DNA of 64,000 bases from Octopus bimaculoides. Its lineage: Eukaryota. The stretch lies in assembly GCF_001194135.2 (NCBI RefSeq), contig NC_068990.1:16471103-16535102 (forward strand). Reading direction: 5' to 3'. Shown here piece by piece: positions 1-64,000 of this stretch. Made by a program: the position numbers and the translations under genes. Numbering within the stretch: the first letter of the stretch is position 1; each line of letters starts with the position of its first letter. A model generated the notes under the pieces. It saw nothing but the letters and a program-made list of their open reading frames with translations, was not told the DNA's origin and searched no databases.

Positions 1-573
1 CAAAATAATCATGTGGTGAAATTGCAGTAATTTAGGGCATTTTTCAGGAAAGTTACATTATCTTATGTTATTTTTTCACTTAAACTAGCAGTCAGCACAT
101 CTTTTCATATCTCCATGACTGTGTTGTTAGATATATCCTTCCTTCTTTAAAGTGCAAGAGTGTAATTTGAGGAGATGTAGTTGCAATTTCTAACAGGTTG
201 TGATGTCATAGACACTGCCTCATTGGCCTTATAGTTCTGGTAGGTTGTTGGGATGGGTATTTAAGATGATTATTGGTATTTCTTTAGGAATAACACCCAC
301 CAATAAATTACCTACTTCCAAATGAGTGGCAAACTCAGATTAAACAACTTCACTATGCTACAGTGAACCAGGTTAAACTACACCAAAAAGGTTTTATTGA
401 ATTTAGTGTGAACAATGGATTAACAACTCATTACATTCATTAATTATTCCAGGCTTACAGCCTAGGATTTCAGGTGTTTCTCTGCAGCATAAATTACAAC
501 TGCCTCCACCCCTTTATATGGAAATGCTGTCCATATAATTGACTACAAAATCTGACACAGAAATTAGAAATTA

Positions 574-670
574 GGCGAGGAGCTTGCGACGACGACGGCG
601 GCAGCGGAACAGCGCGCGACTGCCGAAGCCCGTCTTCTGCGGTTAGGGTTAGGGTTAGGGTTAGGGTTAG
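574..670. repeat. GC/CpG-rich 67-bp segment directly fused to interstitial telomeric repeat (GGTTAG)5
   Basis: 574-640 is 48/67 G+C in an AT-rich background; 641-670 is five perfect GGTTAG units. Confidence 0.9.
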
Positions 671-973
671 TATTCTTTATTGGGTGTTTGGTATTGGTAA
701 CTCAAAAAGTAATTACACATATAGTTACACATACTTGGTTCATTGGGTAATGAAGAATTATTGGTTATATTGTTACTAAAGCTATTAGTAAGAAGAGGCA
801 CAAAACCAGTTGTAATATTCATGTTAGATCAAGTTATATTATAAAAGATGAGTAAAAAACGGACAAGCTATTAGATAATTAGAATCCTGCATGTAATTCC
901 TAATGTTGTTTAATAATTAATTAATTATTAATAGTAACTATATTACCACCTACATTAGGAATGATAGGGTACT

Positions 974-2075
974 CATCATCATCATCATCATCATCGTTTA
1001 ACGTCCGCTTTCCATGCCAGCATGGGTTGGACGATTTGACTGAGGACTGGTGAAACCGGATGGCAACACCAGGCTCCAGTCTGATTTGGCAGAGTTTCTA
1101 CAGCTGGATGCCCTTCCTAACGCCAACCACTCAGAGAGTGTAGTGGGTGCTTTTACGTGTCACCCGCACGAAAACGGCCACGCTCGAAATGGTGTTTTTT
1201 ATGTGCCNNNNNNNNNNNNNNNNNNNNNNNNNNNNNNNNNNNNNNNNNNNNNNNNNNNNNNNNNNNNNNNNNNNNNNNNNNNNNNNNNNNNNNNNNNNNN
1301 NNNNNNNNNNNNNNNNNNNNNNNNNNNNNNNNNNNNNNNNNNNNNNNNNNNNNNNNNNNNNNNNNNNNNNNNNNNNNNNNNNNNNNNNNNNNNNNNNNNN
1401 NNNNNNNNNNNNNNNNNNNNNNNNNNNNNNNNNNNNNNNNNNNNNNNNNNNNNNNNNNNNNNNNNNNNNNNNNNNNNNNNNNNNNNNNNNNNNNNNNNNN
1501 NNNNNNNNNNNNNNNNNNNNNNNNNNNNNNNNNNNNNNNNNNNNNNNNNNNNNNNNNNNNNNNNNNNNNNNNNNNNNNNNNNNNNNNNNNNNNNNNNNNN
1601 NNNNNNNNNNNNNNNNNNNNNNNNNNNNNNNNNNNNNNNNNNNNNNNNNNNNNNNNNNNNNNNNNNNNNNNNNNNNNNNNNNNNNNNNNNNNNNNNNNNN
1701 NNNNNNNNNNNNNNNNNNNNNNNNNNNNNNNNNNNNNNNNNNCCTTGTGAGCTTACGTATGTCCTCAGCAGTTACAGCCCATGTTTCACTGCCATGTAGC
1801 ATGGTTGTTCGTACGCATGCGTCATACAGTCTGCCTTTTACTCTGAGTGAGAGTCCCTTTGTCGCCAGCAGGGGTAAGAGCTCTCTAAACTTTGCCCAGG
1901 CTATTCTTATTCTAGCAGCTACACTTTCAGCGCACCCACCCCCACTACTAACTTGGTCGCCCAGATAGCGGAAGCTATCGACTACCTCTAGTTTTTCACC
2001 CTGGAATGAGATAGAAGTTGTTTCCTGTTTGTTTGCAGTCTTTATTGCACCTGAACATCTGCTCATGAAGATAAA
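974..2075 (-). mobile_element. 5'-truncated RTE-clade LINE (RT C-terminal part, 3' UTR, (GAT)n tail); N gap inside
   Basis: ORF 1131-2066 encodes LEVVDSFRYLG...SLRVKGRLYDACVRTTMLHGSETW; (CAT)7 at 974-994 followed by the same 3' UTR seen at 26128, 32144 and 52975. Confidence 0.85.
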
Positions 2076-8872: not shown

Positions 8873-9400
8873 TGCCGTTACGTTCTGAGTTCAAATTCCG
8901 CCGAGGTCGACTTTGCCTTTCATCCTTTCGGGGTCGATAAATTAAGTACCAGTTACGCACTGGGGTCGATGTAATCGACTTAATCCGTTCGTCTGTTCTT
9001 GGTTGTTCCCTCTATGTTTAGCCTCTTGTGGGCAATAACGAAATAGGTATTTCCTTCTGAGTTCAAATTCCGCCGAGGTCGACTTCGCCTTTCATCCTTT
9101 CGGGGGTCGATTAAATAAGTACCAGTTACGTACTGAGGTCGGTGCAATTGACTTAATCCCTTTGTCTGTTCTTGTTTGTCCCCTTTACGTTTAGCCCCTT
9201 GTGGGCAATAAAGAAATATTTTGTTATTAGTAAGGTGGCGTGCTGGCAGCATCGTCAACGCGTTGGATAAAATGCTTAGCGGCATTTCTTTCAATTTTAC
9301 GTTCTGAGTTGAAATGCTGCCGGTGTCGACTTTGCCTCCCATAATTTTGGGGTCCATAAAATAAGTACCAGTTGAGCACTGGGATCGGTGTAATCGACCC
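8873..9400 (+). mobile_element. Three tandem/adjacent copies of the same SINE family
   Basis: The block GTTCTGAGTTCAAATTCCGCCGAGGTCGACT...AAGTACCAG recurs at ~8880, ~9050 and ~9300. Confidence 0.8.
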
Positions 9401-11857: not shown

Positions 11858-12296
11858 GGATCTTTCTGATTTGGCGGACACCATTTGTTTTCTAATGAAA
11901 CACTTTCAAACTTGGGACACTGGTAGAATGTGTCATATAAAACATCTTTTACTCTTAGTGTTGTTGAGAAAATTTTAGATTTTTAAAGTTATTTTGTGTT
12001 AAAGTTGTCGTATTTTGGTAATTTCAACCAATCACTGACGTCTATTGAGGTGAAGACAATTACTGCTGTGGTTTGTCAACAACATATTGTGGCAGTGTAA
12101 TGAGATCTTTTCCCTTGAATAAAATTAATGCCGTTGTTTGTCAACAACAACTATCGGTGGTACTGTGATTTATGACATCGTTCGTGCATTTTTACTGGTT
12201 TTAGCTTTGGGGTTTTAGGGTTAGGGTTAGGGTTTTAGGGTTAGGGTTCTGGTTTTAGGGTTAGGGTTTGGGTTTTAGAGTTAGGGTTAGGGTTAT
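11858..12296. mobile_element. One-armed copy of the MULE-like MITE, ending in a degenerate TTAGGG array
   Basis: Begins GGATCT; ~11890-12040 matches the left arm of the 14230 element; 12210-12296 is a TTAGGG/TTTTAGGG array; no right arm seen. Confidence 0.75.
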
Positions 12297-12789
12297 GAGT
12301 ATTTTTGCCAAATTTGGTGAAAAATCTGTGGTTATATAAGATATAAAAAATGCTGTTCTGAATTAATATGAGGTTCTAAAGAAGACCTGTCCACAAAACT
12401 GAGTGCTTGAAGAGTTGTGTCCCACCCATATGTAGCAACACACTTTTCACCCACCCTACCTTCAGAAAGCAAACTATATCTCCTCTTCTAAACAGCATCT
12501 TTCTCTTCCTCACATTTGCTCTTCATAAATTATTATTGTTTCCCAATCCCCTTTCTTGCCCTCACTGGCCTGCTCACTGTATTGCTGCCACCTGCCATAC
12601 CTAAAATTTCTACCCTGATTTATGCTCAGATCTTTGTTACTTGAGAGTATACCCTAGCCCTACACCATCTCTCTTCTGCTCTCTCTTACACTTTTGCTGT
12701 CTCCTACTCTCTTTCCCTTTCACTTGGTTACTCTCTCTTGCTTTCCCTGTGACTAGGTAACCAAATGTCTCCTTTACATCAGCACACTT

Positions 12790-14229: not shown

Positions 14230-14795
14230 GATCTTTTTTAAAACGGGGGCCACATTTTTCATTAACGAAACACTTTGAAACTTGGAACACTGGTAGAATG
14301 TGTCATATAAAACATCTTTTTCTCTTAGTCTTCTTTAAAAAAAAAGAAATCCATAAGTTATTCCATGTTAAAGTTGTCGTATTTCTGTAATTTCAACCAA
14401 TCACTGACGTCCATTCAGCCGATATACATTAAGTGCCGACTACATAAACAAACGATTCTGAAACAATTAACCCTAACCCTAACCCTAACCCTAGGGTTAG
14501 GGTTAAAGCAAATTTAAAATGAAAAAAGCAAATAAAACGAAGGTATGGAGATTAAATACGCTTTACATCGCTTAATCAGCCAAAGGAGTAAATGTAAACA
14601 ACTGAATACTTGTCAGTGATTGGTTGAAATTATCGAAATAAGACAATTTTTTACATGAAATAAATTCGAATACAAAAATATTTTTCTGTTCTATAACACA
14701 AAATAGATAAGTATACGAAGTTTGAAAGTTTTCCGTACCAAAAACACTACGTAAAACATTAATGAAAAATGTGGCCCCCGTTTTAAAATAGATCC
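14230..14795. mobile_element. MULE-like fold-back MITE with a central telomeric-repeat palindrome
   Basis: 36-bp terminal IR with 1 mismatch (14230-14265 vs 14759-14794), longer imperfect arms, 9-bp TSD AAAAGGTCT (14221-14229, 14796-14804); TTAA(CCCTAA)3CCCTAGGGTTAGGGTTAA at 14467-14506. Confidence 0.85.
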
Positions 14796-18829: not shown

Positions 18830-19490
18830 CCTTCAGGTAGATGGCCCTGCTCAATCAGTAGAAAAGGTGTAGGTAGAAACTCTATAAGATGTACCCAGTG
18901 CAAGCTATGGACACATAAGAGGTGCAGCAATATCAAAGGACGGCTAACTAGCAAGATAGTTTTTGTATGTGGCAGATGCTCAGGAGCAATAAACACTGAG
19001 AATGGGCAGAAAACAACCTTTACCACACTCCAGGGTGAAAAACTAGAAGTAGTTGATAGCTTCTGCTACCTAGGTGACCAAGTTTGTAGCCGGGGAGGGT
19101 GCACTGAAAATGTAGCTGCTGGAATAAGAATAGCCTGGGCAAAGTTTAGAGAGTTCTTACCTCTGCTGGTGACAAAGGGCCTCTCCACTCAGAGTAAAAG
19201 GCAGACTGTATGACGCATGTGTACGAACAGCCATGCTACATGGCAGTGAAACATGGGCCGTGACTGCTGAGGATATGCGTAAGCTTGCAAGAAACGAAGC
19301 CAGTATGCTCCAATTGATGTGTAATATAGGTGTGCATACTCGACAGAGTGTAAGTGCCTTGAGAGAAAAATTAGACATAAGAGGCATCAGTTGTGGTGTG
19401 CAAGAGAGACGATTGCGCTGGTATGGACATGTGGCAAGAATGGATGAGGATAGCTGTGTGAAAAAGTGCCACACCTTACTCTTTCAAACA
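18830..19490 (+). mobile_element. RTE LINE fragment with a PHD-like Cys/His finger preceding the YLG motif
   Basis: Open frame from 18830: PSGRWPCSISRKGVGRNSIRCTQCKLWTHKRCSNIKGRLTSKIVFVCGRCSG...LEVVDSFCYLGDQV; after a frameshift MLHGSETW...RRLRWYGHVARM. Confidence 0.85.
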
Positions 19491-20013
19491 ATATTTCCTG
19501 GAACATTGTAAACATATGACAGTGACATACATTTACCACAAGCATTCAATGTCAAGAGAAGGAGACATGAACACACACACAAACAACAACTGACTTCTGT
19601 CAGTGTCTATCTACCAAATCCACTAACAAGGCTTTAGTTGGCTAAAAGTTATAGAATACACTAATCGAAGACACCATGTAGTGGAACCCAAAACCATGCG
19701 GTTGAGTAGTGAACCTCTTAGTCACACAGCCATGCCTGCTTTATTTCTTTAATTTTTACAATTACTTTTCATTGATTTTTGTTTTTGTTCATTCAGTTTC
19801 TTTTCTGTTCTCTATCGTTACCTTTTTATTTTTATTTCTGTTCTTTGTGTTTTCTTTTTTCACCTCTTCTTTCTTTGCCTCCTTGTTCATGCCCTCCTCA
19901 TCTGTCTCTCCCACTTTCTACTCCTTGTCTGCCTCTCTCTTTCTCCCTCTCTTCTCTCCCTTATATTACAGTGCTATTGTAACAAAGTTATCATATATGC
20001 CATTCTATTTCAG

Positions 20014-20140
20014 TGGTGGCTTGGCTCTGACGTATTTGAGCATCAAGAAGTCCTTCCTGATGCTGCTATTTTCTTATGGATTTCTCTATGGAATCGGTAA
20101 TTCTATAGCTTATCCTGTCAGCATCAACTGTGTCATGAAG
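20014..20140 (+). CDS. MFS transporter exon 3 (GGLALTYLSIKKSFLMLLFSYGFLYGIGNSIAYPVSINCVMK)
   Basis: TTTCAG acceptor, GTAAGA donor, phase 2 to 0; TM4 YGxxxGxG motif. Confidence 0.92.
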
Positions 20141-20599
20141 GTAAGACATCTATTTGTGGAAAATTTTTCATTTCCTTAAGTTTTACTTAAATTCATTTTC
20201 TTTTTCTATAGTTTACATTCATAAAATCTTTTTTTTTTTTGATCATGACATACTGTTTCATCATAAATTCCTTCTAGGAAGAAGTAAAATGCTACAGGGT
20301 AAATACAACATTGGGCTACTAGGTACATGAGTAGATATAGTGTTGGACTTTTGAGTGAGGTAAGATTTAGTATTGGGCTACTGGTTATGTGGATAAGCAT
20401 AGTATTGGACTGCTGAGTGTATTGATATATATACTATAGTCTATTGATTGTGTGGGTAAATATTGTATTGGGTTACTGGATATGTGGATAAGCATAGTAT
20501 TGGGTGATTGGTTATGAGTTGATTGGTATTGAGCTTTTGGGTGAGTGGGTAAATATAGCATTGGGCTGCTGGGTGTGTGGGTAAATTCAGTCTTCTCTA

Positions 20600-37869: not shown

Positions 37870-37992
37870 GCCTATGGTCAGACATTTATTCACGATGATT
37901 ATTTTCTCGCTATGACTGGTGCTCTGGGAAGCGTTGGTAATGCTATCTCCAGACTAATGTGGGGATTTATTGGTGATAAAATATCTTTCAAG
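37870..37992 (+). CDS. MFS transporter exon 8 (AYGQTFIHDDYFLAMTGALGSVGNAISRLMWGFIGDKISFK)
   Basis: TTTTCAG acceptor, GTAATT donor, phase 0; NxxxRxxWGxxxDK OFA-type motif. Confidence 0.93.
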
Positions 37993-39566
37993 GTAATTAC
38001 TTTCATTAATAATGACAAAATCTGTCTCCTCTTTGTCTTTTTGTGCTCTCTTTTATCTCTGTTGCTACTACTTCCAGGATCTCAAGTTTCATCAAAGTGG
38101 GTGGGTCTTATTAAGAACTGCATATTGTCAGTCTTTCCAGTCCTTTGTCATTTCCTCCATGATGTTCAATGTGTCGAGATCAGCCTTCCCCACTTCATCC
38201 CATGTTTTCCTGAGTCTCCCTTTTCTGCAAGCTCCATCCACATTAAGTGATCAGCACTTTAAACAGTTCTCATCCATGTGTATCATATGTCCATACCTAT
38301 TGTAAGAGGTTTACAAAGCAGTGTTTTGTTCACTGATAGTATGATGGCTAGAAATGGTCCTTCTTAGTTATGCAGTTGTGTGCACACACCCACACATTTT
38401 ATGAATAGCATACAAAGGTAAAACTGTGTGCAACACAAAGTTTGCAATACGAAATTGTTTGTTTTGTTTTTTTTTAATTGAAGACACTTACTTGCATGGA
38501 TGTGCTCATACTTTCAAAGAAAGGACAAAATTTTCATACACCCATTAGAAAAAAAATTAGAAGAAGTAATTATAGCACAGTATTAAGGTGATATGTGTCT
38601 CAAATTATGAGCAGTGCCATCTACATAGGAAACTCTGTAGTGAGTTGATTCATGAATAAAGATAAGAAGAGAAAGATGACCAAGATTCACAAAACACCTG
38701 CATTGATAAAGATGAAGTGAGAAAGAGCTTTGTGTAAACACTATGGATATGATAGAATGACCCGTTAGGAAAGATCTGATTTTAGGCAATGACTGATTGT
38801 TGAAAAGCTTGTTAGATCTTCAGCACATATGATCTAAAGCAGGGCTGGCCAACTTAAGGCCCATAGGCTGCATGCGGCCCACTTGATAATTTCTTGAAAT
38901 GGGTTTATTTAAACAAACATTTTAAAACTTTTATCAAAAATTAAAGATTGTAATGAAAAGTAAAAAAGAAAGATACTACTGTTTTTGCAATGATAATATT
39001 TCATGTTGAATCAATGATCGATCATTCATTCATTATTGTAATAATAGCATGAGAAAGCAAAATGCTTTCAATTTTAAGCAAACGAAAAGTATGAAAAACT
39101 CTTAATTCTGTAATTTGATTATTTGACTATTAGTGCATAAAGTATACAAGCAGCTCTCAAAAAGCTTTGTGATTAAAGTGACCCGCAATGTAATTCAAGT
39201 TGGCCAGGCCTGGTCTAAAGCTTTATTGATAACATAGGCAACTGCATTGCTTTTGCCAGTGTTCTCAAGAACTAGAGCATTGATGTGTGATATAGGATAA
39301 GATCTTCACTGGAACTGGCTCTACAGACATTCTACTAAAAGGCTGTTCAGAGAGATGAAAATCCACAGTGATAATAACAATAGTTAACAACTGATTCCAT
39401 ATTAGACAGAAAGAACTACAGACCAGTCATTCAGAAGACCAGAGAGCTTTTCTTTCTTTTGTATGGAACCTGACTAAGGAGTTATCATAGATTATATAAA
39501 GATTGCGTGTGTGTATATGTGTAGACAGGTGTATATATTAATTGTTTATAAACTTTTTTATTTTAG

Positions 39567-52974: not shown

Positions 52975-53660
52975 CATCATCATCATCGTTTAACGTCCGC
53001 TTTGCATGCTAGCATGGGTTGGATGATTTGACTGAGGACTGGTGAACCAGATGGCTACACCAGGCTCCAATCTGATTTGGCAGAGTTTCTACAGCTGGAT
53101 GCCTTTCCTAACGCCAACTACTCAGAGTGTAGTGGGTGCTTTTACGTGCCACTGGTATGAAGGTACTGGCAATGGCCATGCTCAAAATGGTGTGTTTTAC
53201 GTGCCACCTGCACAGGAGCCAGTCCAGCGGTACTGGCAATGAACCTGCTCGAATGTCTTTTCACGTGCCCAAGTGCCAGGAAGGCGACGTTGGTAATGAT
53301 CACGCTCAAATGGTGCTNNNNNNNNNNGGATTTTGGTCTCACTTGGCTTGCCGGGTCTTCTCAGACACAGCATATTTCCAAAGGTCTCGGTCACAAGTCA
53401 TTGCCTCGGTGAGGCCTAATGCTTGGAGGTTGTGCTTCACCACCTCATCCGAGGTCTTCCTGGGCCTGCCTCTTCCACGGGTTCCCTCAACCGCTAACGT
53501 GTGGCACTGTTTCACACAGCTATCCTCATCCATTCTCGCCACATGTCCATACCAGCACAATCGTCTTTCTTGCACACCACAACTGATGCTTCTTAGGTTC
53601 AACTTTTCTCTCAAGATACTTACACTCTGTAGGATATGCACACTAACATTACTCATCCAT
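52975..53660 (-). mobile_element. RTE LINE 3' fragment
   Basis: (CAT)n tail, 3' UTR subrepeats, and ORF 53339-53656 RRLCWYGHVARMDED...RGRGRPRKT. Confidence 0.85.
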
Positions 53661-55146
53661 AATTTTTTTCATATAATGCATTGACATGTAGAAGATAGCA
53701 CGCACACACACAAACATGGTTGCATGGGTGAGAAGTTAGTTTTGAAACTATATGCTTCTGAGTAATCTCACATGGCCCCAAGGATGGGTATCTCCTCATA
53801 TAATTTCGTATCAACAAAAGCAAAGTTTAGCAAATGGAAACTGAGGCTGATTCATTCTGTATGCTATGCAATATATCTAGTCATATATATATATCTTTTG
53901 TATCTACTCATATATATCGCTTTTCCACAACAGAATTTGAAGCATATTTTCTATGGCTGAATGCTTCCTGTTGCCAATTCTCATCCATTTCCAAGCAAGT
54001 TATTTCTCCATGGCCAAACAATATTTCCATGTAAAATGGGAAATGATCACTTGTATGATGGCAATGCTCACTTACAACCATCAAGTATCAAGACAAGTGT
54101 AACATACAAATGCAAACGAGGTTTCTTCCAGTTTGTCCTCTGGCCCTACTGGACTAGTCCAATGAGTGAAAAAGTCTAATGAAATGCTGTTGTATAGCAA
54201 GGGGGGGAAAAAAAAAAAAAAAGAAAAAAAAAAAGAACCTGACTAAACTATCTAAGACTAATAAAAAACAAGTCAACTGTTAACTGTCCTGCCTTTTATT
54301 ATTCAGAATAATGTATTTATACACTTGCCCCCTTTTTTTAAGGCTAAGTATTTGAAGGAAATTTGGTTACTACTTATAGCATTTTAGACAACCATGTACA
54401 GGCTCCTTGTAGTGAACTGTTCTATAAATTGGTAGCATGAGCAAGTGCAATAATAGACCGATATGGAAACAGTTGAATAAAAATATTTGTTTTGTTCATT
54501 ACATCCCCCCATCAATTCTAGGAAGTGTTAGTGAAACATTGTTTTACAGTAAGATACCCCTACTTGTCACTGGCCCACACCTATTTTTCAAGTAAGGAAT
54601 CTGTTCACACAGCTTTAATGACACGAAGCAAACAGTGTTGATAAAAGCAATGCTACCATCATCACTTGAAGCTAAGATTTAGGGAAATGCCAGAGAATCC
54701 CTTTTTCTTTGTGTGTGCATATGCTATTTCCACTGTGACTGCTCTTCTTAGACATGCATACTGCCAACATTATTTGATTGCCCCAAGCACATAATTCAGT
54801 TACAATCTTTGTCAAATGAAACTGACTTAAAACCCTGCTTTAACCTGATTTACCATATGGAATTTACACTTAAGCAACACAAACTTCCATGGATTTTGTC
54901 CAACCAAATTTCACCCTAAAAAGCAGTAGTCAAAAAGTGATGTGCATTGGAATCACACCTAGAACCACATGGTCCTAGATTTTACCCATGTGATCATGAC
55001 TGCAGCATAAAGAAAATTCATCAAATAGTAAAATAATGTTTCAAACAAAGAGTTGGCTAAAACCCCCAAAAACATTTCTAATAATGCAACATAAAAATAA
55101 GAACAACGAGGTTATCTTTGAGAAAGTCTGACAACTTTCTCAGCTA

Positions 55147-62756: not shown

Positions 62757-62850
62757 CAGTAACTACAAGTGTTTGTGGTATTGCTATTGAAGAATTCTAA
62801 AACAAAATAACTGTGAAACATACAACTGATCAACAAGAAGAATAAGTTAC

Positions 62851-62985
62851 CTTGATTTTCTTGGGTGGCAAGAAGTCCCAATCAGATTCCAAATCGCCAC
62901 TTTCAACTTTCTCGTTATCAATTTTCACTTCGTAAGTGTTGTCTGGTTTTACTATCAAGGTGTACAAGTGGGTATAAACATCATC
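62851..62985 (-). CDS. CALR: Calreticulin exon (DDVYTHLYTLIVKPDNTYEVKIDNEKVESGDLESDWDFLPPKKIK)
   Basis: Calreticulin signature; 135 nt; TACAG acceptor and GTAAC donor. Confidence 0.96.
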
Positions 62986-63096
62986 CTGTAATAATTTCAA
63001 ATGAATTTGATCAGCAATTTGTACAGATGCCAAATAATCAAAAAAAAAAAAAATTTTCTTGACAAATATAAAAATTATTAAGCTTTGCACCCTCAC

Positions 63097-63191
63097 CTTG
63101 CATCGGATATCTTTTTTAGTCAACAAGTTCTTTCCTTTGTAGTTGAAGATGACATGTACTTTCTTTGTGCCAGGACCGCAGATATCAGGAC
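63097..63191 (-). CDS. CALR: Calreticulin N-domain exon (GPDICGPGTKKVHVIFNYKGKNLLTKKDIRCK); upstream exons outside the window
   Basis: GPDICG signature; 95 nt; CCAG acceptor and GTGAGG donor. Confidence 0.96.
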
Positions 63192-64000
63192 CTGGAGATA
63201 TATAATACATTCATTATTGTTAACAGACATGTTAGTTTCTTGTACAAATTTCTGTCACTAGACCAAGGCAAAGTTAAAGCACCACTATTGAGGAATTTCA
63301 GCAATTATATTAACCCCAGTAATTAGTAATATACTCATCTTTATCTTCTGTTATATTTTTGTTGAAATATACAGTATTTTTTCAACAAATTTTGAAAATA
63401 AGAGTCTATTAAAATTATTCAACTGATGTTTGAAACGGAAATTAACATGAAATTTTGATGGAAGGTTTAAATATCTTAATTTTTTAATACAATTCCTAAT
63501 AACGTTTAGTTATAAAAATAAGCTGGGTTTTTTTAATATATATTAAAAAAAAAAGTGAATGAATATGAGGATTCCATAGAGTAAAATAGGCACCAATGGC
63601 AAAATCATTTGAGAAACACTGCTATAACTAAGCTTCTGCTCTATTTATTAATATACTAGCAGAAATACCAGGCTTTGCCCGGGTTAAAGAGAATAATGAA
63701 ATCTAAAAACGCCGTGTAGACGTTTAGTAGCTACGATACCATATTTCTACATTAATAACTCTCCAATCCATGCCAGCATGGAACATAGACATTAAGTGGA
63801 ATGCCAGTCTCTCATCTAGGAAGGCCTTGAACTCAATGTTACCAACTGGGGACTATGTGTGTCGCAGTGATAATAAAAAGACTCAAAGGAGGTCTGCAAC
63901 GAAATAATTTTACTCAACACTTTGCAAGTGAATCAGTGGAGGCAAAGATGCATCTCATTTACTTGACAATTTATGCACCACATTGCAGAAATCACAATGT

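Follow-up and report, generated by a model that had tools for sequence, protein, structure and literature searches.

Interstitial telomeric sequences that lie next to a piece of telomerase RNA sequence have been described in vertebrate genomes by Nergadze et al. in 2007 (PMC2246262) and by Sola et al. in 2021 (PMC8537989). The latter study covers 41 such TERC-derived loci (TERC-ITS), in line with the statement in the original prediction that loci of this kind are known in vertebrates. For the TERC-ITS of Xenopus laevis, it has been proposed that a template-adjacent fragment was reverse-transcribed first and that the repeats were added after it (PMC8537989). Of 29 TERC-ITS sites that were informative, Sola et al. 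found microhomology, small deletions, and filler described as “random” at 24 and attributed these features to end joining (PMC8537989); added nontemplated or unidentified sequence was present at 16 of the 29 (PMC8537989). We found no report of a TERC-ITS from an invertebrate. As for the telomerase RNAs (TRs) themselves, Logeswaran et al. (2020) described 82 new animal TRs, and the 21 mollusc TRs come from gastropods, bivalves, and one aplacophoran, with no cephalopod represented (PMC8480181). The mollusc TRs were found by structure-guided searches (PMC8480181). We found no description of a cephalopod telomerase RNA in the literature.

Here we describe a locus of Octopus bimaculoides at which telomeric repeats adjoin a GC-rich fragment. 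It lies in a 64-kb (64,000-nt) stretch of assembled DNA, all of which was analyzed and which we refer to as the window. The original prediction had reported a CpG-rich 67-mer of ~72% GC abutting exactly five GGTTAG units; TRF and a composition scan returned the same coordinates, composition, and repeat number, and the minus-strand string quoted for the 67-mer is also correct. The resulting 97-base patch (574 to 670) is real and is foreign in composition to the AT-rich octopus DNA in which it lies, to an extent far beyond chance. On the plus strand, the order is ...ACACAGAAATTAGAAATTAG / GCGAGGAGCTTGCGACGACGACGGCGGCAGCGGAACAGCGCGCGACTGCCGAAGCCCGTCTTCTGC / (GGTTAG)x5 / TATTCTTTATTGGG... (Table 1). 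Read on the minus strand, the 67-mer, which we call the leader, is GCAGAAGACGGGCUUCGGCAGUCGCGCGCUGUUCCGCUGCCGCCGUCGUCGUCGCAAGCUCCUCGCC and stands directly 3′ of the C-strand repeats. For comparison, the whole window has a GC content of 36.7% and a CpG observed/expected (o/e) ratio of 0.35. The leader has the highest GC content of all 60,369 N-free 67-nt segments of the window, just 6 of which reach 70% GC, and 60-nt segments that are CpG-rich and at least 65% GC occur only at 565 to 660. Both flanks are AT-rich, with no CpG in the 400 nt to the left (174 to 573) and a single CpG in the 290 nt to the right (671 to 960). The repeat array abuts the leader directly, and its final unit is a complete GGTTAG, as had been claimed for its end register. 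That the CpGs are still intact and the repeats undecayed in a window otherwise depleted of CpGs suggests that the insertion is young. To the right of the array, four ATTGG motifs lie within 86 nt (679 to 764); these may represent a TTGGT-type repeat that has degenerated, or they may be coincidental.

Table 1. Sequence elements of the GC-rich telomeric patch and its immediate flanks (positions within the window)
Element	Position	Strand	Description
Left flank at junction	559..573	+	AG(AAATTAG)x2, 7-nt tandem duplication ending TTAG; TRF 559-574, period 7, 2.3 copies, 100%
GC-rich leader, 67 nt	574..640	+	71.6% GC, 12 CpG, o/e 1.41
Interstitial telomeric sequence, perfect (GGTTAG)x5, G-strand on +	641..670	+	TRF period 6, 5.0 copies, 100% matches, score 60
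Right flank TATTCTTTATTGGGT, adjoining last GGTTAG	671..685	+	Sequence read

The junctions of the patch resemble those left by end joining. The left and right flanks have no direct repeat in common, and there is no target-site duplication. At the left junction, TTAG (570 to 573) constitutes a microhomology with the telomeric repeat, and a 7-nt tandem duplication (AAATTAG, two copies) abuts the insert. The AG(AAATTAG)x2 sequence as a whole may be a footprint of repair synthesis or a preexisting microsatellite; tandem repeats of small size abound in the window (166 TRF rows), so the presence of this duplication at the junction may be a coincidence. Two features that characterize TERC-ITS loci are found at this site, namely, at least one telomeric hexamer directly adjoining a nontelomeric fragment and junctions of the end-joining type, with microhomology and no target-site duplication. 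Since the G strand lies 3′ of the leader, extension of a 3′ end from left to right would yield the leader before the repeats, and, as read from the sequence, fragment-then-G-strand is the only order that would allow telomerase to add repeats onto the 3′ end of the leader. Telomerase products of vertebrates tend to finish in the GGTTAG register. The octopus array finishes in the same register, an agreement that is expected by chance in one case out of six and that was noticed after the fact.

The leader is unique in the window. A scan of the 64 kb with two sub-patterns of the 67-mer, allowing up to 3 mismatches in each, gave 1 match versus 0 expected, and a blastn-short search of the 67-mer within the window returned only 8- and 9-mers elsewhere. 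Nowhere else in the 61 kb of non-N sequence is there a repeat that resembles the 67-mer, and both flanks are single copy in the 64-kb window. Searches beyond the window were similarly negative. A six-frame protein query with the leader against 5.8 billion proteins returned nothing at an E value of ≤10, a result of little weight given that the open reading frames (ORFs) of the window are themselves absent from the records. Two 25-mers from the leader had no match in an exact scan of the JGI metagenomes, an exact-pattern scan of viral contigs with the leader likewise gave no match, and strings of the leader sequence occurred in none of the papers in the literature search. A single 20-mer match, which did not extend, was found in a Gemmatimonadales metagenome-assembled genome; a search space of 596 Gb should yield ~1 such match by chance alone.

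The window contains several other repeats. About half of the genome of coleoid cephalopods consists of repeats. Two copies of one repeat, ~90% identical, lie at 11893 to 12300 and 14263 to 14655, and each ends in telomere-like arrays. These include a degenerate (TTTTAGGGTTAGGGTTAGGG)x4 at 12210 to 12295 and, at 14468 to 14510, (TAACCC)x4 arranged head to head with (GGGTTA)x2 within a 49-nt inverted repeat (14370 to 14418 and 14602 to 14650). This repeat looks like a foldback or MITE-like element that carries telomeric repeats. On the minus strand at 963 to 2066, there is a C-terminal fragment of a LINE reverse transcriptase with an N gap inside it and a (TGA)n tail at 973 to 995; its ORF (1131 to 2066, minus strand) is 100% identical over 78 amino acids to the O. 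bimaculoides UniRef entry A0A0L8I6X9. This identity assigns the window to O. bimaculoides or a species very closely related to it, in agreement with the cephalopod origin assumed in the original prediction. Related LINE fragments are present at 19157 to 19511 and 53136 to 53684. A 173-nt tRNA-derived SINE-like unit is present in 1.9 tandem copies at 8883 to 9218 and, unlike the LINE copies, has kept its CpGs (o/e 1.2). Among the other ORFs, one at 62830 to 63210 on the minus strand contains what we take, by eye, to be a calreticulin-like exon. Two on the plus strand (19709 to 20179 and 37912 to 38250) resemble transmembrane exons of the major-facilitator or oxalate-formate-antiporter type; a word-based search found no homologue of either, and they may be part of an unannotated gene or of a pseudogene, or the resemblance may be due to chance.

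We consider that the patch is best explained, with a probability of roughly 55%, as a short interstitial telomeric sequence that was laid down when a double-strand break in the germline was repaired, with telomerase RNA or some other fragment as the source of the leader; this figure, like the graded wording that we use for the other explanations, expresses judgment and not computation. According to this explanation, the plus-strand 3′ end ...AAATTAG (559 to 573), presumed to be the broken end, would have primed synthesis and gained the 67-nt GC-rich leader. The 3′ end of the leader (...CTGC) would then have been extended by telomerase with five GGTTAG units, the last one complete, and the new end would have been joined to the other end of the break (TATTC...) by end joining, without producing a target-site duplication. 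We infer the break, the involvement of telomerase, the order of events, and the primer role of 559 to 573 from this arrangement, and we assume that the leader and the repeats were inserted in one step. Because the layout matches the order proposed for the X. laevis locus, it is compatible with a leader that was copied from telomerase RNA. It is equally compatible with capture of another GC-rich fragment followed by addition of repeats by telomerase, and we regard such a captured RNA or DNA fragment as a plausible, if tentative, identity for the leader of a telomerase-made patch. Some considerations count against break repair. The two other telomere-like arrays in the window belong to a repeated, foldback-like element, so transposon-borne telomere repeats do exist in this genome, and some LINE and SINE 3′ ends, too, typically have a hairpin shortly before a microsatellite tail.

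A special case of the break repair explanation is that the leader is cDNA of the octopus telomerase RNA from just 3′ of the template, with synthesis starting at an internal priming site, continuing without interruption across the template, and passing into repeat addition. This would be the most economical account, as one RNA template explains both parts of the patch and their exact continuity. The G-strand repeats follow 3′ of the foreign fragment without a break, TTAG is present at the priming-side junction, and the insert lacks a target-site duplication; the high GC content of the leader agrees with that of the GC-rich template-proximal region of human TERC; and an exact 11-mer, CGCGCGCUGUU, is common to the leader and the start of the human CR2 region. 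No published cephalopod telomerase RNA contradicts this account. We nevertheless consider it rather unlikely, for reasons that concern the sequence similarity, the missing pseudoknot strands, the folding of the leader, and the rarity of the layout.

With respect to similarity, we aligned the leader with a working copy of the human TERC sequence (451 nt, in which the template was located where expected). The highest-scoring local alignment is the exact 11-mer (CGCGCGCTGTT); its p value is 0.029 when the 130 nt that follow the template are considered and 0.12 when the entire RNA is considered (3,000 dinucleotide shuffles). As the likeness was observed post hoc, a p value of ~0.03 to 0.12 is marginal. 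The shared 11-mer falls at the start of CR2, which is among the conserved regions of the pseudoknot. In vertebrates, the 11-mer is followed by a U-run, which is replaced by UUCC in the octopus leader; there is no A-run either, and U or A residues never occur more than two in a row within the 67 nt, so the sequence offers no candidate for the U-rich J2b/3 loop or for the P2b/P3 pseudoknot strands. The caveats that accompanied the original prediction, i.e., that U-rich and A-rich strands were not visible and that the match to TERC was short and made post hoc, hold. In human and mouse TRs, the U-rich J2b/3 loop is located ~45 to 50 nt after the template. The template-pseudoknot domain of the validated apple-snail telomerase RNA measures 146 nt in total (PMC8480181), and, in view of both of these figures, the fact that no U-run occurs in these 67 nt counts against telomerase RNA as the source. 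A longer P2 extension could place the pseudoknot strands beyond the fragment, and we have accordingly treated their absence as making this source less probable. Covariance-model searches did not support a telomerase RNA at this site, either: no telomerase family of Rfam 15 matched at an E value of ≤10 in 1 to 1200 or 560 to 685 or at the gathering score in the whole window, and there was no other credible match, Telomerase-vert and all other Rfam families giving nothing at an E value of ≤10 even when 126 nt was searched. A model for protostome telomerase RNA is perhaps lacking from this collection.

Folding of the leader was no better than that of shuffled sequences. The minimum free energy of the 79-nt minus-strand fragment is −21.6 kcal/mol, compared to −25.0 ± 2.8 kcal/mol for 200 dinucleotide shuffles (z = +1.23), and 181 of the 200 shuffles fold at least as well. 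The leader had been described as structured-RNA-like on account of a cUUCGg hairpin on the minus strand, GACGGGCUUCGGCAGUC. While this hairpin can indeed be drawn, it is weak, amounting to −3.2 kcal/mol on its own and having a pair probability of ~0 in the context of the 79-nt fragment. The complementary hairpin on the plus strand is comparable (−1.1 kcal/mol), so the UUCG hairpin does not indicate which strand would be the RNA. The claim of a structured RNA is therefore not supported. Finally, the layout seen here has been proposed for just 1 of the 41 vertebrate TERC-ITS loci (PMC8537989). Our estimates balance this rarity and the lack of pseudoknot strands against two points in favor, the economy of one continuous template and the unusual GC content of the leader.

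The main alternative to break repair is that the patch is a retroposon copy, i.e., a heavily 5′-truncated LINE or SINE with a 3′ untranslated region ending in ...GCCCGTCTTCTGC and a (GGTTAG)n tail, whose insertion by target-primed reverse transcription would have begun on the right. We consider this possible, although on the unlikely side. Coleoid genomes are rich in repeats and include LINEs that end in microsatellite tails, and the LINE with the (TGA)n tail lies just 300 bp from the patch. In stringent-type LINE and SINE 3′ ends, such as those of the L2 clade, a stem-loop is followed a few bases on by a microsatellite tail. The patch has a small plus-strand hairpin, GACUGCCGAAGCCCGUC, 6 nt before the telomeric tail, as such ends do. 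The window also includes two transposon-borne telomere-like arrays, and the SINE-like repeat at 8883 to 9218 demonstrates that some transposon copies retain their CpGs. Against these points stands the occurrence of a single copy in 61 kb of non-N sequence, with no likeness to other repeats of the window. The GC content of the leader (72%) is far above that of the LINE fragments (45 to 52% GC, CpG o/e of 0.46 to 0.76). The absence of a target-site duplication also argues against a retroposon, though weakly, since some LINE clades insert without duplications. To our knowledge, telomeric tails have not been described for any cephalopod element, and none was encountered in our limited searches.

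The remaining explanations appear much less probable. The patch could be a captured subtelomere-telomere junction, or extrachromosomal telomeric DNA ligated into a break, in which case the 67-mer would derive from a subtelomere. A chromosome end does have this orientation, with G-strand repeats after unique sequence; however, capture of an end would require a cut exactly five repeats into the telomere, and Sola et al. present arguments against an origin of such loci by recombination or from t-circles (PMC8537989), which leaves this origin very improbable in our view. We also considered that the locus might itself be a telomerase RNA gene on the minus strand with CCAAT boxes upstream. The four ATTGG motifs at 679 to 764 read as CCAAT on the minus strand and lie just upstream of the C-strand repeats, four within 86 nt as against ~2 per kb in the window. 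However, five full repeats far exceed the 1.5 to 2 that make up a template (PMC8480181), the minus-strand sequence that follows the 67-mer on its 3′ side is AT-rich and contains no CpG, and neither an H/ACA match nor a telomerase model match was found in 1 to 1200 or in the whole window. We rejected this candidate on the basis of the five repeats, the AT-rich 3′ side, and the lack of H/ACA or model matches, and a telomerase RNA gene at this site seems practically negligible as an explanation. A Penelope-like element was rejected as well, because no hammerhead motif is present (no hammerhead family of Rfam matched at an E value of ≤10); in Athena and Coprina elements, a hammerhead ribozyme motif lies beside reverse-complement telomeric repeats (PMC8557442).

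The consequences differ according to the source of the leader. If it does derive from telomerase RNA, then the minus strand would provide ~78 nt of a cephalopod telomerase RNA (the template and 67 nt downstream of it), and the 67-nt sequence would be a probe leading straight to the cephalopod telomerase RNA gene. The locus would also be the first TERC-ITS reported outside vertebrates and would extend telomerase RNA-templated break repair to molluscs. If the leader is instead a retroposon tail or arbitrary filler, then the patch is one more short interstitial telomeric sequence of the ordinary kind, with little interest beyond this site.

Comparison with known systems places the patch between several of them. 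With endonuclease-deficient Penelope-like elements (Athena and Coprina), which combine a hammerhead with a position at chromosome ends, the octopus locus contrasts in being internal, with unique DNA on both sides. Stringent-type LINE and SINE 3′ ends share with it a hairpin close upstream of a tandem-repeat tail, and an element of this kind would have to be extremely 5′ truncated; the octopus patch differs in the lack of a second copy in the window and of a duplication, in its telomeric tail, and in its very high GC content. Like the template-pseudoknot domain of animal TRs (PMC8480181; RF00024), the minus strand has a CUAACC-type repeat followed by GC-rich sequence, and the 11-mer is found as in human CR2. 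Unlike that domain, it has five repeats rather than 1.5 to 2, and it lacks a U- or A-rich strand, a P1.1 hairpin upstream, an H/ACA domain, and a covariance-model match. The vertebrate TERC-ITS loci are similar in that hexamers directly adjoin a nontelomeric fragment and in that the junctions are of the end-joining type, with microhomology and without a target-site duplication, and the X. laevis locus is similar, moreover, in having the fragment first and the G-strand repeats after it. Most vertebrate TERC-ITS differ in containing pieces of the scaRNA, CR4/5, or J2a/3 regions, and these frequently have the reverse orientation. In the vertebrate cases, the fragment was matched to the TERC gene of the same species, and empty orthologous loci demonstrated insertion in a single step. 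With ordinary short interstitial telomeric sequences at double-strand breaks, the patch has in common a few perfect TTAGGG-type repeats in unique DNA. For the filler that such sequences can carry, Sola et al. quote a length of 17 bp (PMC8537989); compared to that length, the octopus leader, with 67 nt and 72% GC, is long and striking.
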